From positions 248,001 to 312,000 of IMG/VR virus record IMGVR_UViG_3300035182_002586: DNA of 64,000 nucleotides; one strand, 5' to 3'. Within the stretch, counting starts at the first letter, position 1, and each line of letters opens with the position of its first letter. A program made the translations under genes and the position numbers. Below the pieces are notes generated by a model. It did not search any database. It was not told the origin of the DNA and saw only the letters and a program-made list of their open reading frames with translations. This document shows positions 36,578 to 57,785 of this stretch, piece by piece.

Positions 36578-36584
36578 TACACCG
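36578..36584 (-). promoter_or_regulatory. CGGTGTA candidate promoter (TA at -12, leaderless)
   Basis: CGGTG-TAGGCT-CACCTC-ATG; no SD between the motif and the start. Confidence 0.5.
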
Positions 36585-36595
36585 TCGTTAAAGGC

Positions 36596-36623
36596 CAAGG
36601 GCCGACGATCCCGCCGGCCCTTG
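36596..36623 (-). terminator. Hairpin downstream of HU gene
   Basis: CAAGGGCCG/CGGCCCTTG 9-bp stem 21 nt after the stop; weak U-tract. Confidence 0.45.
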
Positions 36624-36644
36624 AGTCCTTCCCACCGAAGGGAC

Positions 36645-36980
36645 CTACTGAACGCCGTCCTTGAGCGCCTTGACCGGCGTGGCCTTCACCTTCGTGGAGG
36701 CCGGCTTCGCCGCGATCTTGATCGGCTGCTTCGTGAACGGGTTCACGCCGTCCCGCGCGGGAGTCGCGGCCTTGTGGACCGCCTTGAGGCGGAGCAGGCC
36801 GGGGAGGACGACGACGCCCGGGCCCTTCGGACCCAACTCGCCACGCACGATGTCGGCGATGGCCGAGAGCGTCTGCTCGATGCTCGCCTTCGAGGTGCCG
36901 AGCTTCTCGGCGATCTCGCCGACGAACGCGCTCTTGGTCATGGGCTTCTTGGTGGGCGCCTTGCTGTTCTTGCTGGCCAT
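36645..36980 (-). CDS. hup: HU-like DNA-binding protein
   Basis: MTKSAFVGEIAEK...LPGLLRLK...ARDGVNPFTKQPIKIAAKPA..VK is the HU/IHF fold signature; AGAAGGA SD before ATG 36980. Confidence 0.9.
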   Translation of the reverse strand: MASKNSKAPTKKPMTKSAFVGEIAEKLGTSKASIEQTLSAIADIVRGELGPKGPGVVVLPGLLRLKAVHKAATPARDGVNPFTKQPIKIAAKPASTKVKATPVKALKDGVQ

Positions 36981-37084
36981 TTCGGTCCTTCTGGTTGAGT
37001 GGTGAGCCTGTGGTGCTACCCGCAGGCCGGGGTTGGATGCACGACCCCTACACCACACTGAGCCGATTTGGAGGGCAAAATGCG

Positions 37085-37306
37085 TCAGTCCAGGTCGGCC
37101 CCGTTCGTCAGAGCCCACTTTTCCACAGAAAACAGGTTCACCCGCTGGATTCGCACCTGGTTCTTCGCCAGCATCCGATGCAACAGGTGCGACGCCTTCG
37201 ATGGGGTCAGACCACTCAGCTCAGCTATCTCGGCGGTCGTTCGAGCACAGTCCGGGCGCAAGCAGGTCCGCACGAACGTCGTGATGTCTGCCTCCGTTTC
37301 CTGCAT
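37085..37306 (-). CDS. Small winged-helix DNA-binding protein
   Basis: TTAEIAELSGLTPSKASHLLHRM..KNQVRI; AAGGA SD. Confidence 0.55.
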   Translation of the reverse strand: MQETEADITTFVRTCLRPDCARTTAEIAELSGLTPSKASHLLHRMLAKNQVRIQRVNLFSVEKWALTNGADLD

Positions 37307-37392
37307 GGTTCACGTTCCTTGGAGCGGGTACACTTTCACCTGCCGGGTGGTTCCAGCACTCCTACTACCGCGCCAAGGGGGGCCGATCCATC

Positions 37393-37399
37393 CGGTGTA
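37393..37399 (+). promoter_or_regulatory. CGGTGTA candidate promoter
   Basis: Upstream of ATG 37414 and followed by a GAGGTGAGG SD. Confidence 0.4.
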
Positions 37400-37413
37400 T
37401 CGAGGTGAGGGCG

Positions 37414-37611
37414 ATGGCGATTCGGAAACCGCTCAAGAAAGGCGAGGACGTGGAGATCGTCCCCACAGGCCAGAAGTACGTCGTGCTCGCCGATCAGGAT
37501 GGGGATCAGATCCGCTGCAAGCCCAAGGAGGGTGGGGTCGAGATCGTCCTGCACCTACGGGCCATCCGTCGTGTGCGCACACGCGCAACGACCGTCATGA
37601 TCAAGAGGTAG
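37414..37611 (+). CDS. Small SH3/KOW-like hypothetical protein
   Basis: LKKGEDVEIVPTGQKYVVL is a beta-barrel-like pattern; good SD. Confidence 0.55.
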   Translation: MAIRKPLKKGEDVEIVPTGQKYVVLADQDGDQIRCKPKEGGVEIVLHLRAIRRVRTRATTVMIKR

Positions 37612-37613
37612 CT

Positions 37614-37973
37614 GTGGCTCGGATCGTAGTCTGCGCTGTCGATGTGACGGCGAAACAGCTTCTCTCCCTAGGGACAGACGAACGCCTTCGGTCGGTCACG
37701 GACGCCTTGAAGGTGGAACGGGTCGGTGGACGCCTCACCGTTTCGGTCGATGAAGCGGGGCGGATCCACATAGAGTTCGATGCCCACGGGGCCAGTGACC
37801 CTGTTGTGGAGGCTCAGACTCCACCGATCGAAGAGCCCGGAGAGAAGCTGGAGACGGAGGATCTGCGGCTCACCGTTGACCCTCCGGAGATCTTGATCGC
37901 CGTGCCCACAGAGGAAGAGATGCAGCAGTACGGCACCCTGGAGCCGGACAAGGGCACCACCTCGACGACATGA
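37614..37973 (+). CDS. Hypothetical protein
   Basis: GTG 37614 with a GAGG SD, 2 nt after the upstream stop; acidic C-terminal half. Confidence 0.55.
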   Translation: MARIVVCAVDVTAKQLLSLGTDERLRSVTDALKVERVGGRLTVSVDEAGRIHIEFDAHGASDPVVEAQTPPIEEPGEKLETEDLRLTVDPPEILIAVPTEEEMQQYGTLEPDKGTTSTT

Positions 37974-37980
37974 CCCCCCT

Positions 37981-37987
37981 CGGTGTA
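37981..37987 (+). promoter_or_regulatory. CGGTGTA candidate promoter
   Basis: TA at -13 relative to ATG 37999. Confidence 0.45.
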
Positions 37988-37998
37988 AGAGGGGGGTC

Positions 37999-39696
37999 AT
38001 GGAAGCAACCAAGAAATCCCGTCGTCCCCGATGGTCGGTCGTTCTAGGTACCGTCGCGGGAGTGGTCGCCGTTGCTCTTGTCGTGGCCTGGTTCGTCGCA
38101 CCTGTGATGGTGCGACGCTACGTGGAGCAGCACTACAAGGGGGTCCACATCCAAGGCGGGGTGACCCTATCGTTCCGTGGTGTCGCACTCCACGGGGTCG
38201 AGATCGACAGGGAGGGGGTCAAAGCACAGCTACCCCTCGTGCGTGTGCTCCCGGATGAGAGCGTCGTCGTAGAGGGCGGGACGGCTACCCTCACCCTGAC
38301 GGAAAAGCCAGGGGGCGGTAACAGCGACACGAAGAGACGGGTCGTGGGGTGGTTGGATGCGGCCACGGTCGTGCAGGGGGACGTCAAGGGGACTGCCACG
38401 AAGGTCACGTTCGACGACTTTCGCGTCTGCGCCGAGAAGGTGGAGGCGCAGCACCCAAAGGGTTCGGTGTCTGGTGCCACCGTCTGCGTGAGGAAAGACC
38501 GCACGCTCGTCACGGCCGAGGCGCTGACGGCCACACCGAGCTTCAAGCTCCCCTACATCGACAAGCTGCCGGCCCCGACCCCCAAGGACATCACCGTCAC
38601 TGGCGTCGAGTTCAAACCGAAAGAGCCGAGCGTATCGGTCAAGACGGCCACCTTTGGGCCGGTGTCGGTCAAGTCCGGGTACGCAGCGATCAAGTCCGCG
38701 ACCGTGTATCTCATGGGGGACGTGACTCTGGACCTGGCGGTTCTGCACACGGGGCCGATCACGTTGAAGGACGTGAGCACCAAGATCCCTGTGGCGGATC
38801 TGGCGAACCTGACGAAGATCCCGGTTCAGATCGGCCCCGCTCGGGTGGTGATCAGCCCGGGGGACATGTCCCTCGAAGGGGATGCGAAGTGCCAGGCGTG
38901 GGTCGATGCGTTGCCCACGGAGCTGCGTACGGGCCCCCTTGCCACGATGCGCCTGGAGGGGTCCTTGTCCTTCACAGTCGCCGTGAAGCCCCCCACGCCC
39001 ACGTTCAAGATGAAGGCGGACTGCCACGCCTCGTGTGAGGGGTTCAAGCCTCTGTCGGGGAAGTTCACCTACACGGCCTACGATGCTGACGGAAAGGAGT
39101 TCGTGCGCACGACGGGTCCGGGCACGAAGGACTGGACCCCGATCGGCGAAGTGAGCGCCACGCTTCCGGCCGCCGTGATGTCGACGGAAGACCCCGGGTT
39201 CCTCGGGCACAAGGGGGTCATCCCCGAGGCCATCGAGAACTCGCTGCGGGACGACCTCAAGGCCGACCGCTTCGTGCGCGGGGGCTCCACCATCACGATG
39301 CAGCTCGTGAAGAACGTCTGGCTCCGACGGACCAAGACGCTTGGACGCAAGACCCAAGAGGTCCTGCTGTCGCTCGCGATCGAGTCGTGTCTGTCGAAAG
39401 ACGTGATCATGGAGACGTACCTGAACGTCGTCGAGTTCGGCCCCAATCTCTACGGGGTGGGGCCCGCGTCGCAGCACTACTTCGGAGAAGCTGCGATGAC
39501 TCTCGACCCTGTGCGGTCGTACTACCTGGCTTCGATCCTCCCCGCCCCTCGAAAGGCTCCGCCCCCGAACACCGAGACCTTGGAGCGCATTCGCTCGCTG
39601 ATGATCCGTGTGTCGAAAGAGAGTGGACAGCTCTCGGACACGTTCGGAGCACCTAGCCCTCAGGACGAAGAGGGGTGGGTCGTCAACAAGCCGTAG
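37999..39696 (+). CDS. Membrane-anchored peptidoglycan glycosyltransferase (GT51, monofunctional)
   Basis: N-terminal basic stretch plus TM helix; C-terminal EDPGFLGHKG, RGGSTITMQLVKN, RKTQE and YLNVVEFG GT51 motifs; no transpeptidase domain. Confidence 0.9.
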   Translation: MEATKKSRRPRWSVVLGTVAGVVAVALVVAWFVAPVMVRRYVEQHYKGVHIQGGVTLSFRGVALHGVEIDREGVKAQLPLVRVLPDESVVVEGGTATLTLTEKPGGGNSDTKRRVVGWLDAATVVQGDVKGTATKVTFDDFRVCAEKVEAQHPKGSVSGATVCVRKDRTLVTAEALTATPSFKLPYIDKLPAPTPKDITVTGVEFKPKEPSVSVKTATFGPVSVKSGYAAIKSATVYLMGDVTLDLAVLHTGPITLKDVSTKIPVADLANLTKIPVQIGPARVVISPGDMSLEGDAKCQAWVDALPTELRTGPLATMRLEGSLSFTVAVKPPTPTFKMKADCHASCEGFKPLSGKFTYTAYDADGKEFVRTTGPGTKDWTPIGEVSATLPAAVMSTEDPGFLGHKGVIPEAIENSLRDDLKADRFVRGGSTITMQLVKNVWLRRTKTLGRKTQEVLLSLAIESCLSKDVIMETYLNVVEFGPNLYGVGPASQHYFGEAAMTLDPVRSYYLASILPAPRKAPPPNTETLERIRSLMIRVSKESGQLSDTFGAPSPQDEEGWVVNKP

Positions 39697-39735
39697 CCAG
39701 TCGGAACAATACTCTACTTATGTCTTGTTCCGGCT

Positions 39736-40170
39736 ATGCGACTCTGTACCTGCGGCAACCCTGCGATTTCCGATCGACGTATTTGCACTGCGTGCCGGAA
39801 CAGCAAGCTCCGAGAGCGTTACCAGAACGATACGGAGTTCCGTATGAAACGCCTGTCTGATATGAAAGACAGGTTCAACCCTCAGGTGCGGAGAGAGCGT
39901 TACTACGCACTACAAAGTAAAGCTCTCGCAGTGCTTGGGGGGCCCAAGTGTCGGGTGTGTGGATTTGCTGACCCCAGAGCACTTCAAATCGATCACGTTG
40001 CTGTGGACGGGTACCAACGAAGACGGCAAGGAGAGTCGGGGGAAGCTCTATATCGTAAAGTGATCCGGACTCAAGGGGTTGGGTACCAGATTCTCTGTGC
40101 AAACTGCAACTGGATCAAGAGAGTGGAAGAGGGTAACGGCGGGGGGTCAAAGTCAGGGAGGCTGGGTTAA
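39736..40170 (+). CDS. Small HNH endonuclease
   Basis: CRVCG..DPRALQIDHVAVDG...YQILCANCNWIK; lower GC. Confidence 0.8.
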   Translation: MRLCTCGNPAISDRRICTACRNSKLRERYQNDTEFRMKRLSDMKDRFNPQVRRERYYALQSKALAVLGGPKCRVCGFADPRALQIDHVAVDGYQRRRQGESGEALYRKVIRTQGVGYQILCANCNWIKRVEEGNGGGSKSGRLG

Positions 40171-40182
40171 TCGACCTATACA
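40168..40182 (+). promoter_or_regulatory. Candidate TA-N7-TAT promoter (TAATCGACCTATACA)
   Basis: Upstream of ATG 40217. Confidence 0.35.
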
Positions 40183-40216
40183 AGCGCCTCGACGTACGCC
40201 CACGAAAGGTCTACCG

Positions 40217-40618
40217 ATGCGCCCTGACGACCCCCGCTGGAAGATCGCATCCACCAGCGCCGCTGCTGTCCACGCCGCTCTCGAACACCAGTTCAAGGCC
40301 GTCAAGACGGACCCAAAGGCACTCGGAGAAGCTGCGGCGCAGACGGCGAGGAAGTTCACAGCGGCCGTCCGGGCGTTTCACACCAAGATCGAGGCGTTCG
40401 ACAAGTGGCGGAACCTCCCCGAAGGCGCCTACGAGCTGCCGGAGTTCGCGACCACGTTCGTGTGGGCGGTCGAGAAGGCGGGACCTACACCCGTAGCTCT
40501 CGAACTACGCATGAAAGAGGCGCTGGCGGAGACCCTGCTCGTCGCCCACATCACGGAAGCGTGGTTCGCGGAAGCCCTCACGGCGGTCGGCGGGACGGTC
40601 TGGACCTGGCGCCTCTGA
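40217..40618 (+). CDS. Hypothetical protein (N-terminal WKIAS motif)
   Basis: GAAAGG SD before ATG 40217; helical. Confidence 0.6.
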   Translation: MRPDDPRWKIASTSAAAVHAALEHQFKAVKTDPKALGEAAAQTARKFTAAVRAFHTKIEAFDKWRNLPEGAYELPEFATTFVWAVEKAGPTPVALELRMKEALAETLLVAHITEAWFAEALTAVGGTVWTWRL

Positions 40619-40625
40619 GCTGACG

Positions 40626-40632
40626 TGGTGTA
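40626..40632 (+). promoter_or_regulatory. TGGTGTA candidate promoter for rplL
   Basis: In the intergenic gap, 30 nt before the ATG; a GGAGG SD follows. Confidence 0.45.
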
Positions 40633-40662
40633 TACCTCCGAGTCCACCGGAGGCACCACGCC

Positions 40663-41049
40663 ATGTCGAACGTCAACACGGATCAGATCGCAGAACAGCT
40701 CGGCCAGCTCTCCGTCATGGAGCTGATTGGCCTCACAAAGAAGCTGGAGACCGCCTGGGGCGTTTCGGCGGCGCCTGCCGTCAACCTGGCCCCGCCGACC
40801 CCGTTGCCGGGCACCCCGGTCGTCGCAGAGCAGACGGAGTTCGAGGTCGCCCTCACGGGCCTCGCCGCCCCGGACAAGAAGATCTCGGTCATCAAGGTCA
40901 TCCGGGAAGTCACGGGCCTCGGCCTCAAGGAGGCGAAGGACCTCGTGGAAGCCCTCCCGAAGACCGTGAAGGAAGGCATCGCGAAGGCGGAGGCGGAAGA
41001 CCTCACGAAGAAGCTGCGTGAGGCCGGCGCCACGGTCGAGATGAAGTGA
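40663..41049 (+). CDS. rplL: 50S ribosomal protein L7/L12 (full length)
   Basis: [25 protein letters not shown] and [34 protein letters not shown]...AE.L.KKL.EAGA.VE.K; GGAGG SD. Confidence 0.97.
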
Positions 41050-41069
41050 TCGCTCCCTCGGGGCGTGTC

Positions 41070-41076
41070 CGGTGTA
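41070..41076 (+). promoter_or_regulatory. CGGTGTA candidate promoter for pyrB
   Basis: CCGGTGTACCGGCGCGCCCCGATG; no SD. Confidence 0.45.
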
Positions 41077-41089
41077 CCGGCGCGCCCCG

Positions 41090-42043
41090 ATGACGGACAT
41101 CAAACACGCAGTCTCCATCGACCAGTTCGACAACCCCTCGATCGAGAGGTTGTTCCTACGAGCCAGGACTCTTCGGGACGCCGACGTGCAGGCGAGCAGC
41201 CTCGCGGGCAAGGTCCTCGCCTGCCTCTTCTACGAGCCCTCGACCCGCACCTCGTCCAGCTTCATCGCTGCGATGACTCGGGCCGGGGGCTCGGTCATTC
41301 CGATCACTCAAGGGGTGCAGTTCTCCAGCGTCTCGAAGGGCGAGACGCTGGAAGACACGATCGTCACCCTCGGTCAGTACGCCGATGCGATCGTTCTTCG
41401 TCACCCGGAGGTGGGCGCAGCCGCACGGGCGGCCGCTGTCTCCCCGGTCCCGGTCATCAACGCCGGAGACGGTGCCGGAGAACACCCGACGCAGGCGCTC
41501 CTGGACCTCTTCACAATCCAAGAGGAGTGTGGCGGCCGCCTCGACGAGCTGAACGTGACGTTCGTGGGCGACCTTGCGCACGGCCGTACGGTGCACTCGC
41601 TGGCGAAGCTCCTCGCACGGCACAACACGAAGATCAACCTCGTCTCCCCCTTCCTTCTCCGCCTCAACCGGATCGGGGATGACGACCCTACCTACCGGGC
41701 CGTCAAGCATCGGATCGGACGGGAGCGCACCGTCAAGAACGGGCTCCACGAGGCGCAGGACATCCTGAACGATTCGGATGTCATCTACATGACGAGGGTG
41801 CAGAGGGAGCGCTTCACGTACGCGGAAGGGTACGCGGAGGTGAAGGACTCCTGCCTGCTCACGGACGAGATCGTCGCGGGGCTGAAACCTCGTGCGCGCA
41901 TCCTCCACCCGTTCCCGCGCGTGAACGAGATCCCGACCACCATCGACAAGGACCCTCGCGCGGCCTACTTCCGGCAGATTCGCAACGGGCTGTGGGTCCG
42001 GATGGCCCTTCTCGAAAGCGTCATCCTCGGGAGGACGCCGTGA
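41090..42043 (+). CDS. pyrB: Aspartate carbamoyltransferase catalytic subunit
   Basis: FYEPSTRT carbamoyl-phosphate site, SSVSKGETLEDT, NAGDG..EHPTQALLD, VGDL.HGRTVHSL, YMTRVQRER and LHPFPRVNEI. Confidence 0.95.
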   Translation: MTDIKHAVSIDQFDNPSIERLFLRARTLRDADVQASSLAGKVLACLFYEPSTRTSSSFIAAMTRAGGSVIPITQGVQFSSVSKGETLEDTIVTLGQYADAIVLRHPEVGAAARAAAVSPVPVINAGDGAGEHPTQALLDLFTIQEECGGRLDELNVTFVGDLAHGRTVHSLAKLLARHNTKINLVSPFLLRLNRIGDDDPTYRAVKHRIGRERTVKNGLHEAQDILNDSDVIYMTRVQRERFTYAEGYAEVKDSCLLTDEIVAGLKPRARILHPFPRVNEIPTTIDKDPRAAYFRQIRNGLWVRMALLESVILGRTP

Positions 42044-42074
42044 TCGTCGGCATCCTCGGTCTCGCAGGCTTTGG

Positions 42075-42089
42075 TAGTCTGGTTATAGG
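42075..42089 (+). promoter_or_regulatory. Candidate TA-N7-TAT promoter (TAGTCTGGTTATAGG)
   Basis: 11 nt upstream of ATG 42101. Confidence 0.4.
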
Positions 42090-42100
42090 ACGTCCTGAGT

Positions 42101-42931
42101 ATGGCGCTCACGAGTCACATCTACGCCCTCGTTCACCCTATATCTGGTGAGATCCGCTACGTTGGGAAGTGTGTGACGTCGCTCAAGAGACGACTTCACA
42201 ACCACGAGTACCGAGCACGTAGTGGTCGCGACAAAACCCCCAAAGGGGAGTGGATCCGGCAGCTACACCTGAGGGGGTTACACCCCCTCACCCGGCCACT
42301 CGAAGTAACCACAGAGCTTCGATGGCAGGACGCCGAACGACGGTGGATCGCCAAACTACGAGCAGAGGGACACCCGCTTCTGAACTTGCACGCTGGCGGC
42401 AACGGGGCTCACACACGTGCTGCCCTCGCCCCGCAGTATGCAAGCCTTCTCGGAACGATCTCCGACGCTCGAATCGCGGAAATGGCTGGATTGTGTCGAG
42501 AGACGGTAACGTACCACAGAAGAAGGGCTGGTATCCACGCCTCCAACGATCGCAGTCGGGTCAAGTGCACCTTCCAGAAGGGGGCACCCCCTCCTAACAA
42601 GATCGAGATCCCGTCTGCCCTGCTCGGTCAACTGGGAAAGCTGAGTGACGGGGAACTGGCCAAAACCTGCGGTGTGTCGCGAGGGCTGATTAAGCAGCGC
42701 AGAAAGAAAGCCGGGATCGCCCCTGCTCTCCCGAAAGGCAAAACGCCACATGGGACAGACCACCCCAACGCAAAGTTGACTGAGGAAGTCGTCCGTCAGA
42801 TTCGAGCAAGATACAAGCGATACAGCCGGACAGATGGGTGTGGAGTGATGGCCAAGGAACTGGGGATCGATCGCTCCACCGTGCACGACGTGGTGACGGG
42901 TAAGATATGGAGGGTAAGATATGGAGGGTAA
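42101..42931 (+). CDS. GIY-YIG homing endonuclease with repeated HTH modules
   Basis: HIYALVHP..GEIRYVGK motif; two LLG..SD..IA...G HTH repeats; C-terminal HPNAKLTEE.VR.IR. Confidence 0.85.
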   Translation: MALTSHIYALVHPISGEIRYVGKCVTSLKRRLHNHEYRARSGRDKTPKGEWIRQLHLRGLHPLTRPLEVTTELRWQDAERRWIAKLRAEGHPLLNLHAGGNGAHTRAALAPQYASLLGTISDARIAEMAGLCRETVTYHRRRAGIHASNDRSRVKCTFQKGAPPPNKIEIPSALLGQLGKLSDGELAKTCGVSRGLIKQRRKKAGIAPALPKGKTPHGTDHPNAKLTEEVVRQIRARYKRYSRTDGCGVMAKELGIDRSTVHDVVTGKIWRVRYGG

Positions 42932-42944
42932 GATATGGAGGGTA
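42898..42944 (+). repeat. 3 x 14-bp tandem repeat GGGTAAGATATGGA
   Basis: Units at 42898, 42912 and 42926, plus a partial GGGTA. Confidence 0.95.
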
Positions 42945-42949
42945 GTAGG

Positions 42950-43720
42950 ATGCTTCTAGGTATCAGCGGGTTAGCGAACAGCGGCAAGGACACGGTGGCG
43001 AAGTTCCTCGGGGAAGACCTCCGGTTCGTTGGCATCGCGTTCGCTGATCCCCTCAAGCAGATCGCGAAGACGGTCTACCGCTTCACGGACGACCAGCTCT
43101 GGGGGCCGTCCCACATGCGCAACACCCCCGACAAGCGCTACCCTCGGTCTCACACCTGGGTCCTGGCCGATCGGCTCGCCGAGCACGAGATGACGTGCGC
43201 CTGCTGTGGGGCTGGAGCCAACCGCCGACTCGTCGAAGACGACCTGCTCGTGGTCAATGAGGAAGACGTCTCCCCGTGCTACCTCACGCCGAGGTATGCC
43301 CTCCAGCTTCTCGGCACGGAGTGGGGGCGGCAGTGCTACCCCGACACGTGGGCGCTCCTTGGCGTCACCAACGCCAAGGAGCTGCTCGGGCCCAACGGAG
43401 CTGGACTTCGTTACGACAGGGCGCGTGGCATCTGGCGCTCGGACCGGCACCCGACGGAGAAGGCGGCAGGCGTCGCGATCACGGACGTGCGCTTCAAGAA
43501 CGAGATGAGGGTCATCCGTGAAGGCGGCGGGAAGGTCATCCGCGTTCGTCGACCCGGGGCTGGACTTGGGGGCGGGGCCGGGCTCCACCCCTCAGAGGCA
43601 GAGCAGGCGAGCATCCCGGATTCGGCGTTCGACGCGATCATCGAGAACGACGAGACCCTCGACGTTCTGCGTGCGCGGTCGCACGACACCCTGGTGAGCC
43701 TCGGGGCCACGGGTTACTGA
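42950..43720 (+). CDS. Deoxynucleoside monophosphate kinase
   Basis: LLGISGLANSGKDT P-loop, FADPLKQ, TPRYALQLLGTEWGR, ITDVRFKNE and HPSE are the phage dNMP kinase pattern. Confidence 0.9.
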   Translation: MLLGISGLANSGKDTVAKFLGEDLRFVGIAFADPLKQIAKTVYRFTDDQLWGPSHMRNTPDKRYPRSHTWVLADRLAEHEMTCACCGAGANRRLVEDDLLVVNEEDVSPCYLTPRYALQLLGTEWGRQCYPDTWALLGVTNAKELLGPNGAGLRYDRARGIWRSDRHPTEKAAGVAITDVRFKNEMRVIREGGGKVIRVRRPGAGLGGGAGLHPSEAEQASIPDSAFDAIIENDETLDVLRARSHDTLVSLGATGY

Positions 43721-44559: not shown

Positions 44560-44570
44560 ACCCTCTCAGG

Positions 44571-44585
44571 CCGATAGGAGGGCTA
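44571..44585 (-). promoter_or_regulatory. Candidate TA-N7-TATC promoter (TAGCCCTCCTATCGG)
   Basis: 11 nt upstream of the patatin ATG. Confidence 0.45.
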
Positions 44586-47087: not shown

Positions 47088-47282
47088 AGCCTGGGGGGTC
47101 CTCTTAGAGAGGATCCTCACCTTGCCCTGTGGGCATTTCGACACAACCTGCGACGAGACCCCTCGCAAGAAGCACACGTACGCGACGAGGGGGGACGAGA
47201 GCCCCACGGGAAGTCGTCGGAGTACGGGCAGACAAGGGGTGCATGCGGAGCGGTGGTCCCTGTACACCAGGTCGCCCCTAGC

Positions 47283-47289
47283 TGGTGTA
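47283..47289 (+). promoter_or_regulatory. TGGTGTA candidate promoter (TA at -12 of GTG 47300)
   Basis: TGGTG-TATTCT-CGCACC-GTG; a mirror TGGTGTA lies on the minus strand at 47263-47269. Confidence 0.5.
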
Positions 47290-47813: not shown

Positions 47814-47820
47814 CGGTGTA
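47814..47820 (+). promoter_or_regulatory. CGGTGTA candidate promoter (TA at -12 of GTG 47831)
   Basis: CGGTG-TACTAA-CACCAG-GTG. Confidence 0.5.
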
Positions 47821-49553: not shown

Positions 49554-49567
49554 AAGCACCTTGTGCC

Positions 49568-50570: not shown

Positions 50571-50602
50571 GGGTCGACTCCTGTACGACCCTTCTACACC
50601 GC

Positions 50603-50902
50603 CTAGTCCGTCTCGTCATCATCCGAGTCAGGTGCGTCGTCGTCGGACGGCTCGGTGGGTACGGGGGTTCCAGCACGAGAGAAGATTGCTGCCTTCACCC
50701 GCCGGGACATCGTGAGCATCTTCCTGGTGGTCTCGTCGAGCACGAAGTCCAAGGGGCCCGCAGCCGACTCGAACAGGATCACGTCGCCCACGCGAACGAC
50801 GCATACCCACCAGTCATCTCGGTCGGGAATTCCGCGCACGATCACTTCCCCACCGGGAGAAATGGCTCGTGTTGCTTCACACAGGCGTCGTAGCTTACGC
50901 AT
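50603..50902 (-). CDS. Hypothetical protein with acidic tail
   Basis: GAGG SD; 99 aa. Confidence 0.55.
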   Translation of the reverse strand: MRKLRRLCEATRAISPGGEVIVRGIPDRDDWWVCVVRVGDVILFESAAGPLDFVLDETTRKMLTMSRRVKAAIFSRAGTPVPTEPSDDDAPDSDDDETD

Positions 50903-51119
50903 GGGTCCTCACCCGTGTGAGGAGACAAGAGATTCCTCGACAACTTTGCTGGGGGTCATCTTCGTGTCACGGCAGAGGATAGGTCAGGCCAAGCTCACCG
51001 CCGAAGGGGCGGGGACACCAGCCTTCTGGAGGCCCTGTCCTACCTAGCGAATTTCGCGGGCAAGTACGGCCACGGTTCGCGATAGCGCTGCGGTAACGCT
51101 CTTGTGCGCGGGCGTAGGT

Positions 51120-52052
51120 ATGCCCACCCCGTCCGCGCTCGTCTCGCGCGTCGCCCACCGTTACGCGCTCGTCTCGCGCGTCGCCCACCGGTTTGCAGCC
51201 TCCCACGAGGTCTTCGCGAGCAAGGCCCTGGCGCGTTCCTGGCCAGAGTTGGTCAGCATGGTCGAGAAGGATGCGCAGGCCGTGGGGCACTGGCGTAAGA
51301 AGTTCGTCTCGGAGTCCTTGGCCATTCTCAAGAAGGGCCGGGCCGATAGCGAGGCCATGGTCAAGGGGCCGTGGTGGGAGCGCTATCCGGACGCCGTGAA
51401 AGGGAACTTGAAGGACATCGAGTTCGTGTTCTCGACGGTCGAGAAGAACGTCAAGAAGCTCGAAACGAAGATGATCGACGAGCCTCTGGCGGGGCACGAG
51501 GTCAGCCAGATCCACATGGACCACTGGGACCCCGAGATGTTCGCAGACGGTCAGACGAAGGCTGACTACGGCCGCAAGCCCATCGACCCGATCTTCGAGG
51601 CCGTGCAAGCGGTCACCACGAAGTACCACGAGTTCTGGAAGCGCTTCAACGCGAAGTACGACCTCGGGAGCCTGAACGTCACCCTCTATGGCCTTCTCCC
51701 CGCCAGCTTGAACAAGAAGAGCCGCCTGAACTTCGAGCTGATCCAGAAGCTCGACGGGGAGGACCTGGAGAAGGCCCTCCACTGGTACAGCGGCGAGCTG
51801 GAGAAGCTCGCGAAGGAAGTCGAGAAAGAAGGTCCTCCCGGTGCCGCGAACGCGCTGTCCGTCGGTGCCGGCCTCTCGGCCCTCATGGGCGAGGCCAAGA
51901 AGAAGGGCGATCAGTGGACCGCCGACTTCGCCAAGTCCCTGATGGGCCAGGCCGAAAGAAGGCACCCGTTCTCCGACAAGCAGCGGAGCCTGCTCGATGC
52001 GAAGCTGCACGAGTACCACGTGCCACCCGTCAACTACACGATCTGGTGGTGA
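51120..52052 (+). CDS. Hypothetical protein with duplicated ALVSRVAHR[YF] N-terminus
   Basis: AGGT SD before ATG 51120; 30-bp tandem duplication at about 51134-51190. Confidence 0.7.
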   Translation: MPTPSALVSRVAHRYALVSRVAHRFAASHEVFASKALARSWPELVSMVEKDAQAVGHWRKKFVSESLAILKKGRADSEAMVKGPWWERYPDAVKGNLKDIEFVFSTVEKNVKKLETKMIDEPLAGHEVSQIHMDHWDPEMFADGQTKADYGRKPIDPIFEAVQAVTTKYHEFWKRFNAKYDLGSLNVTLYGLLPASLNKKSRLNFELIQKLDGEDLEKALHWYSGELEKLAKEVEKEGPPGAANALSVGAGLSALMGEAKKKGDQWTADFAKSLMGQAERRHPFSDKQRSLLDAKLHEYHVPPVNYTIWW

Positions 52053-52056
52053 CCCG

Positions 52057-52770
52057 ATGGCATTCCTCGGCCTCCGCGTTCCTCTCGAAACCGCCCGCCT
52101 CTTGTCCGAGGTGCCGGACGTCGCCAAGTACGGTGATCCGGAGCCGCTCGATCGGTTCCACGTGACCCTGCTCGTCCTCGGGGACATCCCCATCGAGGAC
52201 GTAGCGCGCACTATCGAACCTGTCTTCAAGGTTGTCTCCGAGACCCGGCCCTTCACGGTCTCGACGTCACACATCACGACGTTCCCGCCCGGTGAGACGA
52301 CCCCGATCATCGGGCTCATCGACTCTCCCGAGATCCACGTCCTCAGGGCCCGCCTCACCGAGGCGCTCGGGGAAGCCGACATCGAGTACAACCGCAAGTT
52401 CAAGGACTACGTACCCCACGTCACGCTTGGGTACTCCGCCCCCGACCTGCACTACGATGGTGGGATCAACGTGCACCTCCCCGTCCCGATCTCGTGGGGC
52501 GCTCACGAGCTGGTGCTGTGGGGTGGGCACGTCGACGATCAGGTCATGACCCGGGTGATCGTGACCTTCCCGTTCTCGCTCGGTCTTCCTCGTCCGGGAG
52601 ACGAACCGGAGCAAGAGAAGGCGGAAGAGCCGGAGAAGGTCAAGGACAGCATCCGCTACAAGGCTGCCGTGCGTCTCGCGATGCACGAGGGGCAGACCGG
52701 GTGGCCCTCACGCTCTAGTACGGCGAGTCGTGTGCTCAAGCGCTACCTCGGAGCCGTTCGAGGAGGCTGA
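52057..52770 (+). CDS. 2H phosphoesterase, Acb1/T4 gp57B-like
   Basis: Two H-x-T-h motifs (FHVTLL and PHVTLGY) in a context PEPLDRFHVT...KFKDYVPHVTLGY resembling Acb1 (PVPREKIHST...DFDDYTPHITLSY, recalled from memory). Confidence 0.75.
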   Translation: MAFLGLRVPLETARLLSEVPDVAKYGDPEPLDRFHVTLLVLGDIPIEDVARTIEPVFKVVSETRPFTVSTSHITTFPPGETTPIIGLIDSPEIHVLRARLTEALGEADIEYNRKFKDYVPHVTLGYSAPDLHYDGGINVHLPVPISWGAHELVLWGGHVDDQVMTRVIVTFPFSLGLPRPGDEPEQEKAEEPEKVKDSIRYKAAVRLAMHEGQTGWPSRSSTASRVLKRYLGAVRGG

Positions 52771-52774
52771 TCCC

Positions 52775-53686
52775 ATGCCGATGCAGATCGAGTGGTGCTC
52801 AAGGTGCAGTGCAGCGATCTACGACGTAGACGACGTGCCCGGAGCCTGCGGTTGCCCTGATGGGCAGCTTCGGGGCCTCCTCGCCATGCGCCGGATCGCA
52901 GCCGGAACCCCCGCCCCTCAACCCGTGGCGTCCCCGCCCCCGGTCGTGACGCCCTCTTGGGACACCATCCAGGTGGCCGTTCAGAAGGCCGTGCGAGCTG
53001 CCGTGCAGGCTCCTGCACGGGCCCCGCTCGTCACTCCGATCGCCACTCCGATCGCCCCCACCTCCGGTTTGCCGGACCTCACCCCCGACATACTGATGTC
53101 CGGCAACGCACTCGCTGAGTACCAAGCGATGCGATCTGGAGTCATCCCGAGCAGCAGCCAGGCACCCGTTCGAGGGCGTCGTGGGGACGAGCCCGTCGAA
53201 GTCTCGTGGGACGACAACGGTGAGGACGCCCCGCCTGTCACGGGGGCGCTCGAAGAGCTGTGGCTCGGGCGCGCCGAGATGGAGCAAATCGCGAGCAGTG
53301 GGGTGGACATCGAGTTCTCGACTCCCGACGAGTACGAAGCTCCCTCTCGCCCTCGCTACAGCGAAGCCGCCCGCTTCCGTGTTGATCGACCCCCGCCCCG
53401 TGCCCCCACTCCTACTGGACCTCGGGTAGGCGGAGTCGTTCGACAAGACGGGGAGGTCGTGGGGAGCCGTCAGGCACTTCGACAGACGGCCGCATCGGCC
53501 CCCCCTTCCCTGCGCGAGATCCGGCAACGGGCTCGTGAAGGCGTCGTCTCACCGCCCCAAGAAGTTCGGGTAGCCGTCCGAACGGCCCCTGTTCGAACCG
53601 CCCCTGCCCGAACGGTCCCCGCGGAGCCCCCGCCCATGTCCGCGTACGAGCGGATCATCAACGGGCAAGGCCCCCTCGACGACTAG
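52775..53686 (+). CDS. Hypothetical protein, N-terminal Zn ribbon, Pro-rich disordered body
   Basis: WCSRC...ACGC; GGAGG SD. Confidence 0.6.
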   Translation: MPMQIEWCSRCSAAIYDVDDVPGACGCPDGQLRGLLAMRRIAAGTPAPQPVASPPPVVTPSWDTIQVAVQKAVRAAVQAPARAPLVTPIATPIAPTSGLPDLTPDILMSGNALAEYQAMRSGVIPSSSQAPVRGRRGDEPVEVSWDDNGEDAPPVTGALEELWLGRAEMEQIASSGVDIEFSTPDEYEAPSRPRYSEAARFRVDRPPPRAPTPTGPRVGGVVRQDGEVVGSRQALRQTAASAPPSLREIRQRAREGVVSPPQEVRVAVRTAPVRTAPARTVPAEPPPMSAYERIINGQGPLDD

Positions 53687-54048
53687 TTCGGCTTCTTCGC
53701 GGGCGGCTTGTCCTGCGGGGGGAGGTCGGAGACCGGGCTGACGCCCTTACGCACGGCGACCTGTCTGATCGCTGGATAGAAGGCCCTGGCGACACGAAGG
53801 GCGGCCTGCTCGTATTCGAGCCTCACGTGAGCGAGTTCGTTCAGCATTTGGTGCGCTCCCTCCGGCACTTCGAGGAGGAAGTCCATCACGTCCTCAGCCA
53901 CGATGTCGGACAGCTCGATCATCAGTTGCTTGCGTTCGACTGGATCGTTCGTCTCCGCGATCGTCATCGCGAGGCGGAGAGCGTCATCTGAGAACACGCC
54001 GTCGTCTTGGGTCGGGGCTCCACAGGTCGGGCAAGATTCGTCGCTCAT
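53683..54048 (-). CDS. Hypothetical protein with N-terminal CPTC
   Basis: 121 aa; convergent 4-bp overlap with the preceding gene. Confidence 0.55.
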   Translation of the reverse strand: MSDESCPTCGAPTQDDGVFSDDALRLAMTIAETNDPVERKQLMIELSDIVAEDVMDFLLEVPEGAHQMLNELAHVRLEYEQAALRVARAFYPAIRQVAVRKGVSPVSDLPPQDKPPAKKPN

Positions 54049-54226
54049 GACCAGAGGATAGCCGCTACCCGGTGTACCGGCACGCCCATGCGACGGGTTG
54101 GGTTACCCGTTCTGGGGAAATCGACATCGACCCCCATCAGCTTCCTTGACAACACCTACGCTGTTGAGGAAACACTACAACCCTCCGTGACCTAATCGGA
54201 ATCGGATCAGAACAAGGAGACGTCTC

Positions 54227-54457
54227 ATGCCCGCTGCGAAGAAGACCACCGCCAAGAAGACCACCGCCAAGAAGACCACCGCCAAGAAGGCCCCCGCGAA
54301 GAAGGCCGCCCGCAAGACCACCGCGAAGAAGGCCCCCGCGCGCAAGACCGCGGCCAAGAAGGCGCCGGCCAAGAAGGCCGCGCGCAAGCCCGCCGCCAAG
54401 AAGGCCGCGCGCAAGCCCGCCGCCAAGAAGACGGTCGTGGCGCCCCCGGCGATCTGA
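54227..54457 (+). CDS. Histone H1-like Lys/Ala-rich DNA-binding protein
   Basis: (A/T)AKK and PAKKAARK repeats across 76 aa; AAGGAG SD; own terminator. Confidence 0.85.
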   Translation: MPAAKKTTAKKTTAKKTTAKKAPAKKAARKTTAKKAPARKTAAKKAPAKKAARKPAAKKAARKPAAKKTVVAPPAI

Positions 54458-54478
54458 TCGTCGCGGTCCGACACGTTG

Positions 54479-54517
54479 AAGGCCCGCCCCTGAAAAAGGA
54501 GCGGGCCTTCGGTTTTT
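54479..54517 (+). terminator. Intrinsic terminator after H1-like gene
   Basis: AAGGCCCGC...GCGGGCCTT stem followed by CGGTTTTT. Confidence 0.75.
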
Positions 54518-54532
54518 CCGGGCCTTGGGAGG

Positions 54533-55591
54533 TCAGAAGTCCTTTCGGTCGACCTCGTGGTACCCGCACACTCCATCATCCAGGACGACGAACCGCTTCC
54601 CGTTGTTCGTGTCCTTCTCGTCGATACGGGTCCAGAACCGGATCTTGCGCCCCGCCCGATGGGGCAGGACGTAGAGGCACTTCTTGATGCCGGGGTTCAC
54701 GGGGTTCTCGTACGAGATGAAGAGGACGTTGCCCTTGTCCCGTACGATCATGCTCTCGGGGATGTCCCGGATCGACCGGTAGGGGACGATCGTGAAGTTG
54801 ATGTTGATGCTCCTGCCCTTGAGCGTCCCCGAGGGGATCGTCCCATGGGCGGACCCGATGGCGACGTAGCGGGCGCCCTGGAACTCGAACGTCTCCAGGA
54901 ACGGGTGGGACATCTTCGGTGCATAGCTCTCGCGCATGATGGTCCAGAGCGGCCCCTCCGACCGCATGAACGGGTGCTCGCTGAACTGCGCGAACTCGTC
55001 GTGTTCCGCCTCGTTGATCAGGTCGTAAAACTCCTCGTCGCTGATGTAGACGTGGGAGTCCGAGGGCCGGGGACCGGGGATGATCTCCGGGGAGGCCGCC
55101 AGCTCGTCCACCAGTTCCTCGTCCGACTTGCCGAGGAACCGGGTCGGAGTGCTGTCCGTGACGGGCAGCCATTGCAGACCGGGGTTCGGCGTGTTCAAGG
55201 AGGGCTTCGAGGGACCTGCGCTATCGATGGGTGCAGGCACCGGAGGAGCAGCCTCCACAGGCGCGGGCGACACTACCGCGTCTTCCCTCGCCCACTCGGG
55301 AAGACCAGTGCCCCCAATGCGGACGATAGCGTCCTGGTAGGTCGTCCTCGCGTACTTCTTGTCCGTCGAGTCCGCGTCCTTGCTCGTGAGCACCGTCCGC
55401 AGGAAGTCGTCGAGAACCCCCTTGAGGGTGCCGGCCTTGATGGCGGCGTCGATGACCTTCTCGCGGAACACCCTGACGACGAACTTCTCCGTGCCGATCT
55501 TCCTCTGCTCGCGGCTACGCCGCGACGTGGCCTCGTGGGCCTCACGCTCTTCCATGGGATCCTCGCTTGCTTGCAGCACTTGCAGAGGCAT
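54533..55591 (-). CDS. Hypothetical protein
   Basis: 352 aa; two domains joined by a Pro-rich linker; start may be 55555. Confidence 0.6.
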   Translation of the reverse strand: MPLQVLQASEDPMEEREAHEATSRRSREQRKIGTEKFVVRVFREKVIDAAIKAGTLKGVLDDFLRTVLTSKDADSTDKKYARTTYQDAIVRIGGTGLPEWAREDAVVSPAPVEAAPPVPAPIDSAGPSKPSLNTPNPGLQWLPVTDSTPTRFLGKSDEELVDELAASPEIIPGPRPSDSHVYISDEEFYDLINEAEHDEFAQFSEHPFMRSEGPLWTIMRESYAPKMSHPFLETFEFQGARYVAIGSAHGTIPSGTLKGRSININFTIVPYRSIRDIPESMIVRDKGNVLFISYENPVNPGIKKCLYVLPHRAGRKIRFWTRIDEKDTNNGKRFVVLDDGVCGYHEVDRKDF

Positions 55592-55668
55592 CCCGTTGCT
55601 TGCGTGGGGTGCCTCGGAGCAACGGACCTTGCCGCCGCTCCGAGGTCAGAGGTACACCGGAAACCCGT

Positions 55669-56262
55669 TCAGAGCTGATCGTCTGTGTCGAGTAGGCGCT
55701 CTTGCCAGGTAGGGGGTGTCAGGTCTCTACCCGCTGGCTCGAAGGTCCGCGTGAAGATGTACCCGTCCATCAGCTCGGGCGTTCGATCCCCCTCAACCCA
55801 CACGAAGCGGACTCGTACGAAAGGGCCCGTAACGACCTCCACGACACGAGCCAGGCGACCGCTGCGCCGCTCCTGCACGAGCATTTCCACGGTAGCCCAC
55901 AAGGGCTCGTGTAGGTCCGGAATGGGACCCGGATGGTGCAGGGCCTCACGGAGCTGGCGATCACGGTCCGCCTCTTGGGTTCGGCGGACGAACTCCCGCA
56001 GCTTGGGTGAGGTGAGAGACCGGTCGTGGGCGTACCGTAGATGTAGGCCGTGTAGCTCTCGCTGTTGCGGCCGTGTAGCCCCTTCGACGAAGACCACCTC
56101 AAAGTCGAAGGCGTCTGGATGGTCTATGACCTCGTGGAAGCTCACGTCTTGCACATGAGGATCACGTCGAAGCTGATCGAAGTGCCGGCGCATGAGTGTG
56201 TGATCCTCGGCCGAGAGAACCACGTACCGGAGCTGCCATCGGGCGGGGGTGGGGGTAGGCAC
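55669..56262 (-). CDS. Hypothetical protein with C-terminal PPTWQERLLDTDDQL
   Basis: GGAGGT SD; C-terminal SH3-like segment. Confidence 0.6.
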   Translation of the reverse strand: MPTPTPARWQLRYVVLSAEDHTLMRRHFDQLRRDPHVQDVSFHEVIDHPDAFDFEVVFVEGATRPQQRELHGLHLRYAHDRSLTSPKLREFVRRTQEADRDRQLREALHHPGPIPDLHEPLWATVEMLVQERRSGRLARVVEVVTGPFVRVRFVWVEGDRTPELMDGYIFTRTFEPAGRDLTPPTWQERLLDTDDQL

Positions 56263-56275
56263 GTCACCTCCGAAG

Positions 56276-56614
56276 CTATTCGTCGAAGCGGGTATCGTCG
56301 AGAACCCTCTCCCACGTGGATAGCGGGACGGGACAAGGACCGAACCCTACAACAAGAAGCACCTGGTGACGCTTCTCCCCGCCCTCCTCGTAGGTGACGT
56401 GGAAGCTCGTGTAGCCCGACCAGTGCTCTACCTGCGAGACAGCGAAGTCCTCTACGTTGAGCGCCGTCTTCACGTAGTGCGTGGCGTCGGCGTAGATCGC
56501 GGGCCCCCCCGGATCCGACAAGTGGTAGATGCGAGGAAGTTTCGAGGAAGGGCGCTCCACCCCGAGCTGCGTGAAGAGGTGCTCGGCTAGCTCCCCTTGG
56601 TCTACCGCTGCCAT
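56276..56614 (-). CDS. Hypothetical protein with C-terminal LSTWERVLDDTRFDE
   Basis: ATG 56614 chosen downstream of the upstream stop. Confidence 0.6.
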   Translation of the reverse strand: MAAVDQGELAEHLFTQLGVERPSSKLPRIYHLSDPGGPAIYADATHYVKTALNVEDFAVSQVEHWSGYTSFHVTYEEGGEKRHQVLLVVGFGPCPVPLSTWERVLDDTRFDE

Positions 56615-56676
56615 CGAGCCCCACGCCTCCGGAAAGGGGGTCAAGACAGCGTAGACCGGTGGGGATCGACGGATTC

Positions 56677-57258
56677 TCACGCCTCTTCCTCCAAGAGACG
56701 CGTCCACGCGTCCAAGGCGGGGGGCGACACTTCTTCTGCAAGCGCCTCCACATCCGTCGTGTCGGGAACCGGGGCGCGATCCCCGAAGAGGTCCGGGACG
56801 CGACGCGTCGGGGAGTAGTCCGGTAGAGGAAGTGCGACCTCGAAGCAAGCGCTGCGCTGTGCGAGCACCACCTGCCACCGGAGGCTCTCCCGTCCGTCGA
56901 GGGCCATGTAGGGTTCCGCTTGCAACGTGACCGTCAGATGCCGTGCGTGCGCACTGAAGACCCCCTCCACGTCGTGGGCCGACTCCAAGGAGAACACGTA
57001 GTCGTTGCCCTCGCCGGGCTGACCCACGGAGTCCGCGTCGAGAACCCAGTACCCACCTCGCTCAATGGTTCTTCGCGCGAAGTCGAACTGGAGTCGAGGC
57101 AACATGAGGGTGCTCGGAAGGTCTCCCATCAGAGAACGCGTGTTCTCCACGAGAACCTGAGCGGGAAGGTCATGCGTTGCCCCGAGCTGGAGAACGAGTG
57201 CCCCGGGGAAGGAATCGGGGTGGACGCGAACAACGAGCGCGGTGAAGTCGATTAGCAT
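56677..57258 (-). CDS. Hypothetical protein with C-terminal PPALDAWTRLLEEEA
   Basis: ATG 57258 overlaps the upstream stop. Confidence 0.6.
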   Translation of the reverse strand: MLIDFTALVVRVHPDSFPGALVLQLGATHDLPAQVLVENTRSLMGDLPSTLMLPRLQFDFARRTIERGGYWVLDADSVGQPGEGNDYVFSLESAHDVEGVFSAHARHLTVTLQAEPYMALDGRESLRWQVVLAQRSACFEVALPLPDYSPTRRVPDLFGDRAPVPDTTDVEALAEEVSPPALDAWTRLLEEEA

Positions 57259-57731
57259 TGAAGTTCGTTCACGATGAGGTGATCCCACAGCGAGATGCGC
57301 TTGCCCCATCCCGGCACAAGGGCCCGAAGCGCTGCGCTTACAGGCCAGAAGAACGAGTCGTAATACTGGTCGGGCCAGTGGAACTGGCCTCGGTCGTCCG
57401 TCACCCACAGCTCTTTGCCCGAGGCGTCGATGCCGATCGGGCTAACGCCAGTCGCGAAGAGCCAGCCGTAGCGCACTTCCTGGATGCGGAGAACCGCAGG
57501 GCGCCGCCGCTCGACGACGCAGTTGTGTGCGTAGTCGACCTCCTCCCCTACGGCCAACCACGAAGGGGCGGTGACACCTCGTTCGATCGGCGGTCGATAG
57601 CGCTGCCACCGGGCTCGAATCTCATCGTCCGTCAGGAAGAGGATCTGCGTGTGGCACCCCTCGATGTGACAAGGGCGCCGCCGTTTCTGGCCCGGCCGAA
57701 CCACAGGCTCCGTACCGATACCGATCGCCAT
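57252..57731 (-). CDS. Hypothetical protein with C-terminal ISLWDHLIVNELQC (start uncertain)
   Basis: ATG 57731 preferred because ATG 57797 would overlap the divergent start at 57796. Confidence 0.5.
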   Translation of the reverse strand: MAIGIGTEPVVRPGQKRRRPCHIEGCHTQILFLTDDEIRARWQRYRPPIERGVTAPSWLAVGEEVDYAHNCVVERRRPAVLRIQEVRYGWLFATGVSPIGIDASGKELWVTDDRGQFHWPDQYYDSFFWPVSAALRALVPGWGKRISLWDHLIVNELQC

Positions 57732-57778
57732 CCGCCGGCCGTGGCGGTCAACCCACCAGGATCCTCGGGGTAGCGTTG

Positions 57779-57785
57779 CGGTGTA
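57779..57785 (+). promoter_or_regulatory. CGGTGTA candidate promoter (TA at -12 of ATG 57796)
   Basis: CGGTG-TACAGC-TTGGGC-ATG; no SD. Confidence 0.5.

Follow-up and report, generated by a model that had tools for sequence, protein, structure and literature searches.

Gene content and motif sites of the window

The window is a stretch of 64,000 nucleotides, bases 248001-312000 of the 528,957-bp IMG/VR virus record IMGVR_UViG_3300035182_002586 (63% GC), and the element studied in it is the heptamer YGGTGTA, i.e. (C/T)GGTGTA, a putative promoter for leaderless mRNAs that is referred to below as class 1. Positions 1-33 kb are filled by a tail and baseplate module on the minus strand. Beyond 33 kb the window carries non-structural genes, including those for L7/L12 (rplL), aspartate carbamoyltransferase (PyrB), an HU-like protein, a deoxynucleoside monophosphate kinase, a GH25 lysozyme, and a 2H phosphoesterase. 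For a tail protein encoded at 27566-31081 (minus strand), 174 homologs were found, on metagenomic contigs as long as 659 kb, and the phage is therefore a member of a large clade of huge phages. Genes were called with our own codon-usage caller, which is blind to the motif and yielded 705 genes.

The window contains 17 copies of YGGTGTA, compared with 6.8 +/- 2.6 in dinucleotide shuffles, and 17 copies were reached by 0 of 100 shuffles. The sites are given below, with distances counted from the T of the terminal TA to the start codon.

36578..36584, minus strand: CGGTGTA, 12 nt before ATG 36567 of a 287-aa gene (35704-36567); C at -1, no Shine-Dalgarno (SD) sequence
37981..37987, plus strand: CGGTGTA, 13 nt before ATG 37999 (565 aa, transglycosylase domain, 37999-39696)
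41070..41076, plus strand: CGGTGTA, 15 nt before ATG 41090 of pyrB (41090-42043)
47283..47289, plus strand: TGGTGTA, 12 nt before GTG 47300 (167 aa); back to back with the copy at 47263-47269
47263..47269, minus strand: TGGTGTA, divergent partner of 47283-47289; the nearest open reading frame (ORF), ATG 47244 (46 aa), is 20 nt off and a doubtful target
47814..47820, plus strand: CGGTGTA, 12 nt before GTG 47831 (267 aa)
54070..54076, plus strand: CGGTGTA, 13 nt before ATG 54088
57779..57785, plus strand: CGGTGTA, 12 nt before ATG 57796 (97 aa); C at -1
37393..37399, plus strand: CGGTGTA, 16 nt before ATG 37414 (65 aa), with GAGGTGAGGG between; very short leader with SD
40626..40632, plus strand: TGGTGTA, 32 nt before ATG 40663 of rplL (40663-41049); leadered, with SD
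50595..50601, minus strand: CGGTGTA, 26 nt before ATG 50570 (172 aa), SD between; leadered
37049..37055, minus strand: TGGTGTA, 70 nt before ATG 36980 of the HU-like gene (36645-36980); leadered, with SD
55653..55659, minus strand: CGGTGTA, 63 nt before ATG 55591 (352 aa); probably a leadered promoter
59048..59054, plus strand: CGGTGTA, 86 nt before ATG 59139 (105 aa, SD); possibly a leadered promoter
1146..1152, plus strand: YGGTGTA inside a large opposite-strand gene; probably chance
32546-32552 and 57834-57840, both minus strand: YGGTGTA inside genes; probably chance

The eleven motif sites listed with their distances in the initial annotation of this DNA were all verified in the sequence, and its identification of pyrB and rplL was confirmed by Pfam. 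The OTCace_N match in pyrB begins at residue 5, so the pyrB start codon is correct. The ORF at 54088 comprises just 35 aa, which makes the target gene of that motif doubtful. The leadered examples in the window are 37414, rplL, 50570, and the HU-like gene.

Position, context and conservation of YGGTGTA

Genome-wide, YGGTGTA occurs in 250 copies and the reversed pattern in 81. The start codon of an ORF of at least 60 aa was located 11-15 nt downstream of 137 of the 250 copies, with a mode of 12 nt; offsets of 11, 12, 13, 14, and 15 nt held 24, 51, 35, 21, and 9 sites, and other offsets about 4 each. Position had been named in the initial annotation as the key evidence, and the positional test gave this spike. 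Motif-led genes make up about 1 in 5 of the genes of this phage and of its relatives. The positioned share was 54% for CGGTGTA, 48% for TGGTGTA, and 24% for AGGTGTA, and the remaining one-mismatch variants were positioned in 4-12%, with the exception of CAGTGTA (2/9). A set of 41 unrelated viral loci, single matches from a scan of IMG/VR with the class-2 pattern described below, was used as a negative control only; there, 7 of 112 YGGTGTA copies were positioned. In the hexamer enrichment upstream of all gene starts, GGTGTA ranked first (18.7-fold). Nor was the motif as frequent inside coding sequence as outside it, since 182 of the 250 copies were intergenic, where about 15 were expected from same-composition permutations (intergenic DNA is 13.5% of the genome). 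Among the approximately 67 intragenic copies in the genome, the sense strand was near expectation and the antisense strand was depleted.

Alignment of the sites on the motif revealed no informative position outside YGGTGTA (at most 0.09 bits everywhere from -62 to -18). The position five bases after the motif T was A, C, G, or T in 19, 37, 61, and 20 sites, i.e. there is no preference for T at -7, and TG directly abuts TA in every copy, with no base between. When the sites were aligned on the start codon, 100 of 136 motif genes had C at -1, compared with 48% of other genes, and the whole pattern can be written YGGTGTA-N9-12-C-ATG. ATG was the start codon of 85% of motif genes and 64% of the others, and an SD-like sequence preceded 13% and 44%, respectively; both the preference for ATG and the depletion of SD are required by leaderless initiation. 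The gap upstream of motif genes was mostly 10-30 nt, and overlap with the previous gene was rare. The motif-linked start was the one preferred by the motif-blind coding score in 89 of 127 motif genes, and in 74 of 127 no start codon preceded it in the open frame; Pfam domains start within the first 5-9 residues of the products of pyrB and the adenosine deaminase and D12 methylase genes. Hairpins around the motif, suspected from a few cases (37981, 41070), were not supported as a general feature: folding of -40..+3 gave mean z values of -0.45 for class 1, +0.25 for class 2, and -0.01 for controls, and z fell below -2 in 15%, 4%, and 8% of sites, respectively.

Multisubunit RNA polymerases favour a pyrimidine at -1 and a purine at +1 of the transcription start, and the start-site preference of bacterial RNA polymerase is 7 > 8 > 6 ~ 9 nt. 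With TA placed at -12/-11, the motif-to-start spread (12 > 13 > 11 ~ 14 > 15) and the combination of C(-1) with purine(+1) would match these preferences; the enrichment of C(-1)/purine(+1) lends indirect support to 5' ends at the start codon. As nothing is conserved outside the heptamer, after TA or elsewhere, and neither a -35 element nor a T at -7 is present, the element would be a -10-only promoter; with TG abutting TA as well, the extended -10 geometry proposed in the initial annotation was not found in its canonical form.

In nine divergent gene pairs the genes are only 24-39 nt apart, and the spacer is made up of two motifs arranged back to back, with 11-14 nt between each motif and the ATG of its gene (for example 56495-56520, 120317-120356, and 333948-333987 of the genome). 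In one such spacer the overlapping motifs form GGTGTACACC. Both transcripts must arise inside these spacers, in which there is no room for a -35 element or a leader, and because two polymerases cannot sit on both motifs together, competition or alternation between the paired genes is implied.

The motif was also found before mature tRNA 5' ends, at 15 and 17 nt for tRNA-Thr and tRNA-Ser and at 45 nt for tRNA-Ala, and 115 nt before the transfer-messenger RNA (tmRNA). About 53 tRNA genes are located outside the window at 123254-176528 of the genome, with the tmRNA at 175160-175517. One tRNA from this region has the anticodon tta and would read TAA; despite this, no recoding was assumed, because the standard code gives a coding density of 87%. 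Of 73 intergenic motif copies away from starts, 58 were still oriented toward a co-oriented downstream gene, and 36 of these were 16-120 nt upstream of the gene, with an SD between in 21. The tendency noted earlier, for the motif to be more distant from the start when there is an SD, thus holds beyond the window. It also applies to other phages: the HU-like gene is leadered in six phages, and the motif precedes it by 46-70 nt (46-52 nt in five relatives), with an SD between.

Relatives were represented by seven loci of +/-10 kb each, with a tail protein 36-53% identical and 49-64% GC. In these loci GGTGTA was positioned in 19 of 53 copies and a control hexamer in 3 of 55. The motif was located 11-16 nt before orthologous starts of the transglycosylase protein, the 287-aa gene, a PolyA polymerase (PolyA_pol), and a UvrD helicase. 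The distance to ATG is 11 nt for the transglycosylase orthologs in L157 and L158, and that to the start of the 287-aa gene ortholog is 12-13 nt in L157 and L154. One ortholog switches among phages between a motif-driven leaderless start and a start that has a terminator plus an SD. Overall, the motif is retained across phages of 49-66% GC, including contigs that carry homologs of the sigma-like protein described below. In a variant strain (95-97% identity) from a groundwater metagenome, a compensated indel (36573/36575) leaves the distance at 36567 at 12 nt; none of the differences listed changes the three covered motifs, which is weak evidence. A megablast comparison of 22 kb with a phage collection gave no match, and neither did an IMG/VR search for related loci with the transglycosylase protein.

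The genes led by class 1 are non-structural (pyrB, arginyl-tRNA synthetase, two DNA methylases, an SNF2 helicase, and adenosine deaminase), and class 1 is absent from the long SD-led structural operons. For this reason it is probably a temporal class, possibly the middle one.

Other promoter-like classes and candidate transcription factors

A second pattern, class 2, was defined as ATGGATC-N15/16-KGTAGwrGGnnC-ATG and occurs in 57 full copies of rigid geometry. The spacing between ATGGATC and KGTAG is 15-16 nt in 55 of the 57 sites, the distance from the T of GTA to ATG is 10 nt, and 49 of 55 have C at -1. Class 2 is concentrated at 415-525 kb of the genome, mostly before small ORFan genes. Its two-block layout may resemble that of the promoters of extracytoplasmic function (ECF) sigma factors (a GGAAC-like -35, a GTC/GTT-like -10, and a spacing of 16-17 nt). 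Three copies are in the window.

58101..58134, plus strand: ATGGATC-N16-GGTAGTAGGGTC, directly before ATG 58135 (GmrSD_N protein)
35670..35704, minus strand: ATGGATC-N16-TGTAGAGGGGGC, directly before ATG 35669 (68 aa)
37360..37391, minus strand: ATGGATC-N16-GGTAGTAGG, with about 50 nt of leader before ATG 37306 (73 aa)

The class-1 motif at 37393..37399 adjoins the last of these -35 boxes on the opposite strand. The initial annotation had assigned an AAGTGTA variant of class 1 to the gene at 37306 (minus strand); the distance of 24 nt is correct, but the class-2 promoter found upstream (ATGGATC at 37385-37391) explains the gene better, and the variant was rejected. GATC is present in every class-2 -35 box and is 2.2-fold over-represented genome-wide. 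A D12 (Dam-like) adenine methylase gene at 15573-16565 of the genome (minus strand) has a class-1 promoter. That methylation switches class 2 off or on is only an idea.

A T-rich sequence, ttCTTATC, was seen repeatedly in the structural blocks (210-400 kb of the genome), 25-60 nt upstream of genes led by an SD. The following CTTATC copies lie in the window.

2974-2979, minus strand: CTTATC
35115-35120, minus strand: CTTATC
63041-63046, minus strand: CTTATC

This sequence is a candidate for a third promoter class, late and leadered, and a three-step programme with class 2 early, class 1 middle, and the leadered class late is plausible.

RNA polymerase beta and beta-prime subunits and a T7-type enzyme were not found in six-frame Pfam searches, nor was the catalytic DxDGD motif (D[FYW]DGD) in the six frames; the phage therefore probably uses the host core enzyme. 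Phage genes for initiation factors (IF) IF1, IF2, and IF3 were searched for and not found. The six-frame search with Pfam Sigma70_r2 gave no match at an E of 0.01 or better. A sigma-like protein of 393 aa is encoded at 93299-94480 of the genome (plus strand) and belongs to a family of 155 proteins, of which 17 of 40 aligned members match Sigma70_r2 at an E of 0.01 or better (best 4.9e-6). Its residues 244-371 match a PHROG sigma factor family (E = 1.2e-4; region 4 test). The AlphaFold model of the protein (predicted local distance difference test score, 80) was compared with known structures using VIA-align, and the best matches were sigma-2 domains (about 25 of the top 36 rows, Z 5.6-7.3); the 393-aa protein carries an insertion inside its putative sigma-2 domain. 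Full-length alignment of the model to ECF sigma factors in holoenzyme structures gave a high root-mean-square deviation, PDB sequence searches with single proteins (the sigma candidates) gave no match, and the ESM Atlas provided just a weak lead from the sigma candidate to a viral sigma-r2 cluster. With moderate confidence, the 393-aa protein would be a divergent sigma factor. Its own gene is preceded by a class-2 promoter with a leader of about 20 nt. Two further phage proteins, encoded at 479437-479790 (plus strand) and 71524-72171 (minus strand) of the genome, consist of sigma region 4 only, one of them with two copies. Three contigs with homologs of the 393-aa protein are dense in positioned GGTGTA, with 14 of 17 copies positioned in L173. 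Beside its sigma-like gene L173, a relative from a JGI metagenome, carries the type I-C cas genes Cas5d, Csd1, and Cas7 and a DEAD/ResIII-helicase gene, possibly Cas3.

The 393-aa protein is also recorded, in identical form, on a contig of 620,031 bp, so the IMG/VR record (528,957 bp) may be incomplete and the genome larger. The record is classed as a provirus, which is doubtful for a tailed phage of such size. The stretch was detected in sediment, microbial-mat, groundwater, and hot-spring metagenomes. The nearest relatives of pyrB belong to the Chloroflexota class Anaerolineae (53-57% identity); this is the best hint to the host, which would likely be of that class. Elsewhere in the window, a 2H phosphoesterase/LigT-family protein (52057-52770, plus strand) has a weak match to Acb1, a protein directed against cyclic oligonucleotide-based antiphage signalling, and a protein at 58135-58665 (plus strand) has a GmrSD_N domain; both are possible counter-defence or defence genes.

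Interpretation, alternatives and precedents

From the statistics, geometry, context, and conservation of the motif we infer the transcription start, the polymerase with its sigma factor, and the timing. YGGTGTA would be the entire core promoter of one transcription class in this phage and its clade, with mostly leaderless output (probability about 0.8). It would act as a -10-type element with TA at about -12/-11 and no need of a -35. RNA polymerase would melt the DNA at the motif and start about 12 nt (11-15 nt) past the T, at a purine following C. In about 135 genes this purine would be the A or G of the start codon, giving a leaderless, SD-less mRNA translated by 5'-terminal-AUG initiation; from positions 16-120 nt upstream, the motif would drive tRNA transcripts or SD-led mRNAs such as those of rplL and the HU-like gene. 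The host core RNA polymerase would be directed to YGGTGTA by the phage-encoded 393-aa sigma factor. According to the initial annotation, the position of the promoter would make transcription start at the start codon or close to it, and the sequence-level and comparative tests all agree with this.

Several points weigh against this interpretation. Motif genes often lie 11-40 nt behind a same-strand gene without a detectable terminator, and read-through transcripts would then carry SD-less starts internally. The missing T at -7 and the abutment of TG on TA are unusual for sigma-70, and it is the geometry that suggests a -10 element. The 393-aa protein itself fails with Pfam Sigma70_r2 (E = 0.024), its model reaches a Z of at most 7.3, which makes the sigma assignment weak, and Foldseek gave no significant match for the model; moreover, this protein might instead serve class 2 or the late class. 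No RNA runs matching this DNA were found, so the transcript 5' ends are predicted ones. The set of genes is the product of a home-made caller.

That the same leaderless promoter is read by a primary or alternative host sigma factor, with no phage specificity factor, is unlikely but would have a precedent in the Thermus phage phiYS40, in which most middle and late mRNAs are leaderless (PMC3594737). Chloroflexi possess TA-led leaderless genes (PMC3160421), but in five Anaerolineae genomes YGGTGTA was not in excess and was less frequent than the reversed control, and a 400-kb sample of one Anaerolineae genome was SD-led and showed TATAAT-like rather than GGTGTA signals. In the window, sigma-70 consensus promoters were absent from 35-55 kb (0 vs 2.1 expected). 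The motif lacks the T at -7 that primary sigma factors use and is kept in phages of widely differing GC content, presumably with different hosts. While the failure to find a phage RNA polymerase and the moderate sigma assignment fit reading by a host factor, the phage does encode a sigma-like protein.

The motif could also act in RNA, either as a non-SD translation signal or as an endonuclease site cut about 10 nt downstream to give leaderless mRNAs. The fixed short distance to the start codons of SD-less genes, the position of many motif genes shortly behind another gene with no terminator seen, and the similarity of GGUG to part of an extended SD are compatible with this, but a distance of 10 nt to AUG is excessive for SD pairing with the GAUCACC part of 16S rRNA. 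Transcripts must originate within the nine divergent spacers, which hold only two motifs, and no other conserved promoter-like sequence was found upstream of the motif. Its occurrence before tRNA genes and the tmRNA, and 46-120 nt upstream of SD-led genes (an arrangement conserved for the HU-like gene), further makes action in RNA very improbable. Least probable of all, with hardly any weight, is an operator, other protein-binding or recombination site, for example a cassette-boundary repeat, that accumulates in intergenic DNA and is not a core promoter. Such a site might be as short and strictly conserved as this motif, and could form the palindrome GGTGTACACC seen in some divergent spacers; against it, the copies are mostly single and oriented with the downstream gene, their distance to the start codon follows the polymerase preference given above, the start shows an excess of C(-1)/A(+1), and the 24-39-nt spacers contain no alternative promoter candidate.

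If YGGTGTA is a core promoter, a wider picture can be drawn tentatively. Throughout this clade of huge phages, with Chloroflexota-type hosts, early and middle expression might be largely leaderless and rely on divergent sigma factors of their own and on YGGTGTA and ATGGATC/GTAG promoters unlike described consensus sequences, with the structural genes alone SD-led. Translation would thus be separated from that of the host by mRNA architecture, and L7/L12, the approximately 53 tRNAs, and the tmRNA could join the same takeover. The link between leaderless mRNAs and L7/L12, already put forward as speculative in the initial annotation, is still pure speculation, given that rplL is itself leadered with an SD.

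The regulatory logic of huge phages known only from metagenomes is almost undescribed. Here, with no input beyond the sequence, a heptamer pinpoints the start codons of about 135 genes and flags transcription units; it also seems to divide the genome into temporal classes, and should improve gene-start annotation in a clade reaching 660 kb. If the starts are confirmed, this would be the largest leaderless gene set described for any phage, and a clade-wide strategy beyond one Thermus phage. A promoter without T at -7, together with a candidate sigma factor, represents a tractable new specificity problem, and the motif could be put to use in high-GC hosts as a promoter that is compact and portable.

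Among known systems, phiYS40 is likewise a large phage in which a gene class shares a single -10-region element and has leaderless mRNAs, although the temporal class and the leaderless transcripts are predicted here. Its element was reportedly found by Sevostyanova et al. in 2007 to resemble the extended -10 consensus of the host and to be read by the host RNA polymerase. YGGTGTA, in contrast, lacks T at -7, does not resemble TATAAT, and is not enriched in candidate host genomes. Furthermore, the structural (late) genes are SD-led in the present phage, the phiYS40 transcript 5' ends were mapped whereas those proposed here are predicted from sequence, and the phiYS40-type programme involves a rise of IF2 and a fall of IF3, while no phage genes for IF1, IF2, or IF3 were found here.

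Leaderless genes in Actinobacteria, Deinococcus-Thermus, and others are marked by a TA signal some 12 nt ahead of the start (PMC3160421, PMC12340547). The TANNNT genes of this kind share with class 1 the distance of TA (about 12 nt, from the first T), the absence of SD, and the preference for AUG. Unlike TANNNT/TAtaaT genes, class 1 has conserved bases upstream of TA (YGGTG), none after it, and no T at the sixth position, and it is the signal of a phage clade, not of cellular housekeeping as in Deinococcus-Thermus and Actinobacteria. With the extended -10 promoter of sigma-70 (TGnTATAAT) it has in common the lack of a -35 and a TG just upstream of TA at about -12/-11, the A being invariant by motif definition. 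It differs in that no base separates TG and TA, the four remaining hexamer positions are uninformative, and two more G and a Y are required upstream.

T4 late promoters (TATAAATA, read by gp55 and the host core enzyme) are also short, -10-only phage promoters with a minimal phage sigma factor, as is proposed here, but they differ from YGGTGTA in sequence, and the late mRNAs of T4 carry leaders; the 393-aa model matched chain 7d7d_F of the T4 late transcription complex with a Z of only 5.8. The phages AR9, with 5' untranslated regions of 26-491 nt (PMC5312081), and phiKZ, in which leaderless transcripts were not detected (PMC8244752), resemble the present phage as very large phages with promoter classes of their own. 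Both encode their own multisubunit RNA polymerases, whereas no RNA polymerase genes were found here. In Cluster K mycobacteriophages, the start-associated sequence (SAS) is a short conserved motif repeated just upstream of many phage starts and overlapping the ribosome-binding site, within a few bases of the start. YGGTGTA, by contrast, lies 10 nt from the start, excludes SD, and occurs also ahead of tRNAs and at larger distances from SD-led genes. In the literature, no paper was found that presents GGTGTA as a phage promoter or that deals with leaderless expression in jumbo or huge phages. The logic is already known from the precedents of phiYS40 and Deinococcus; new are the recognition sequence, its span of a whole clade of huge phages, and the exclusion of structural genes.

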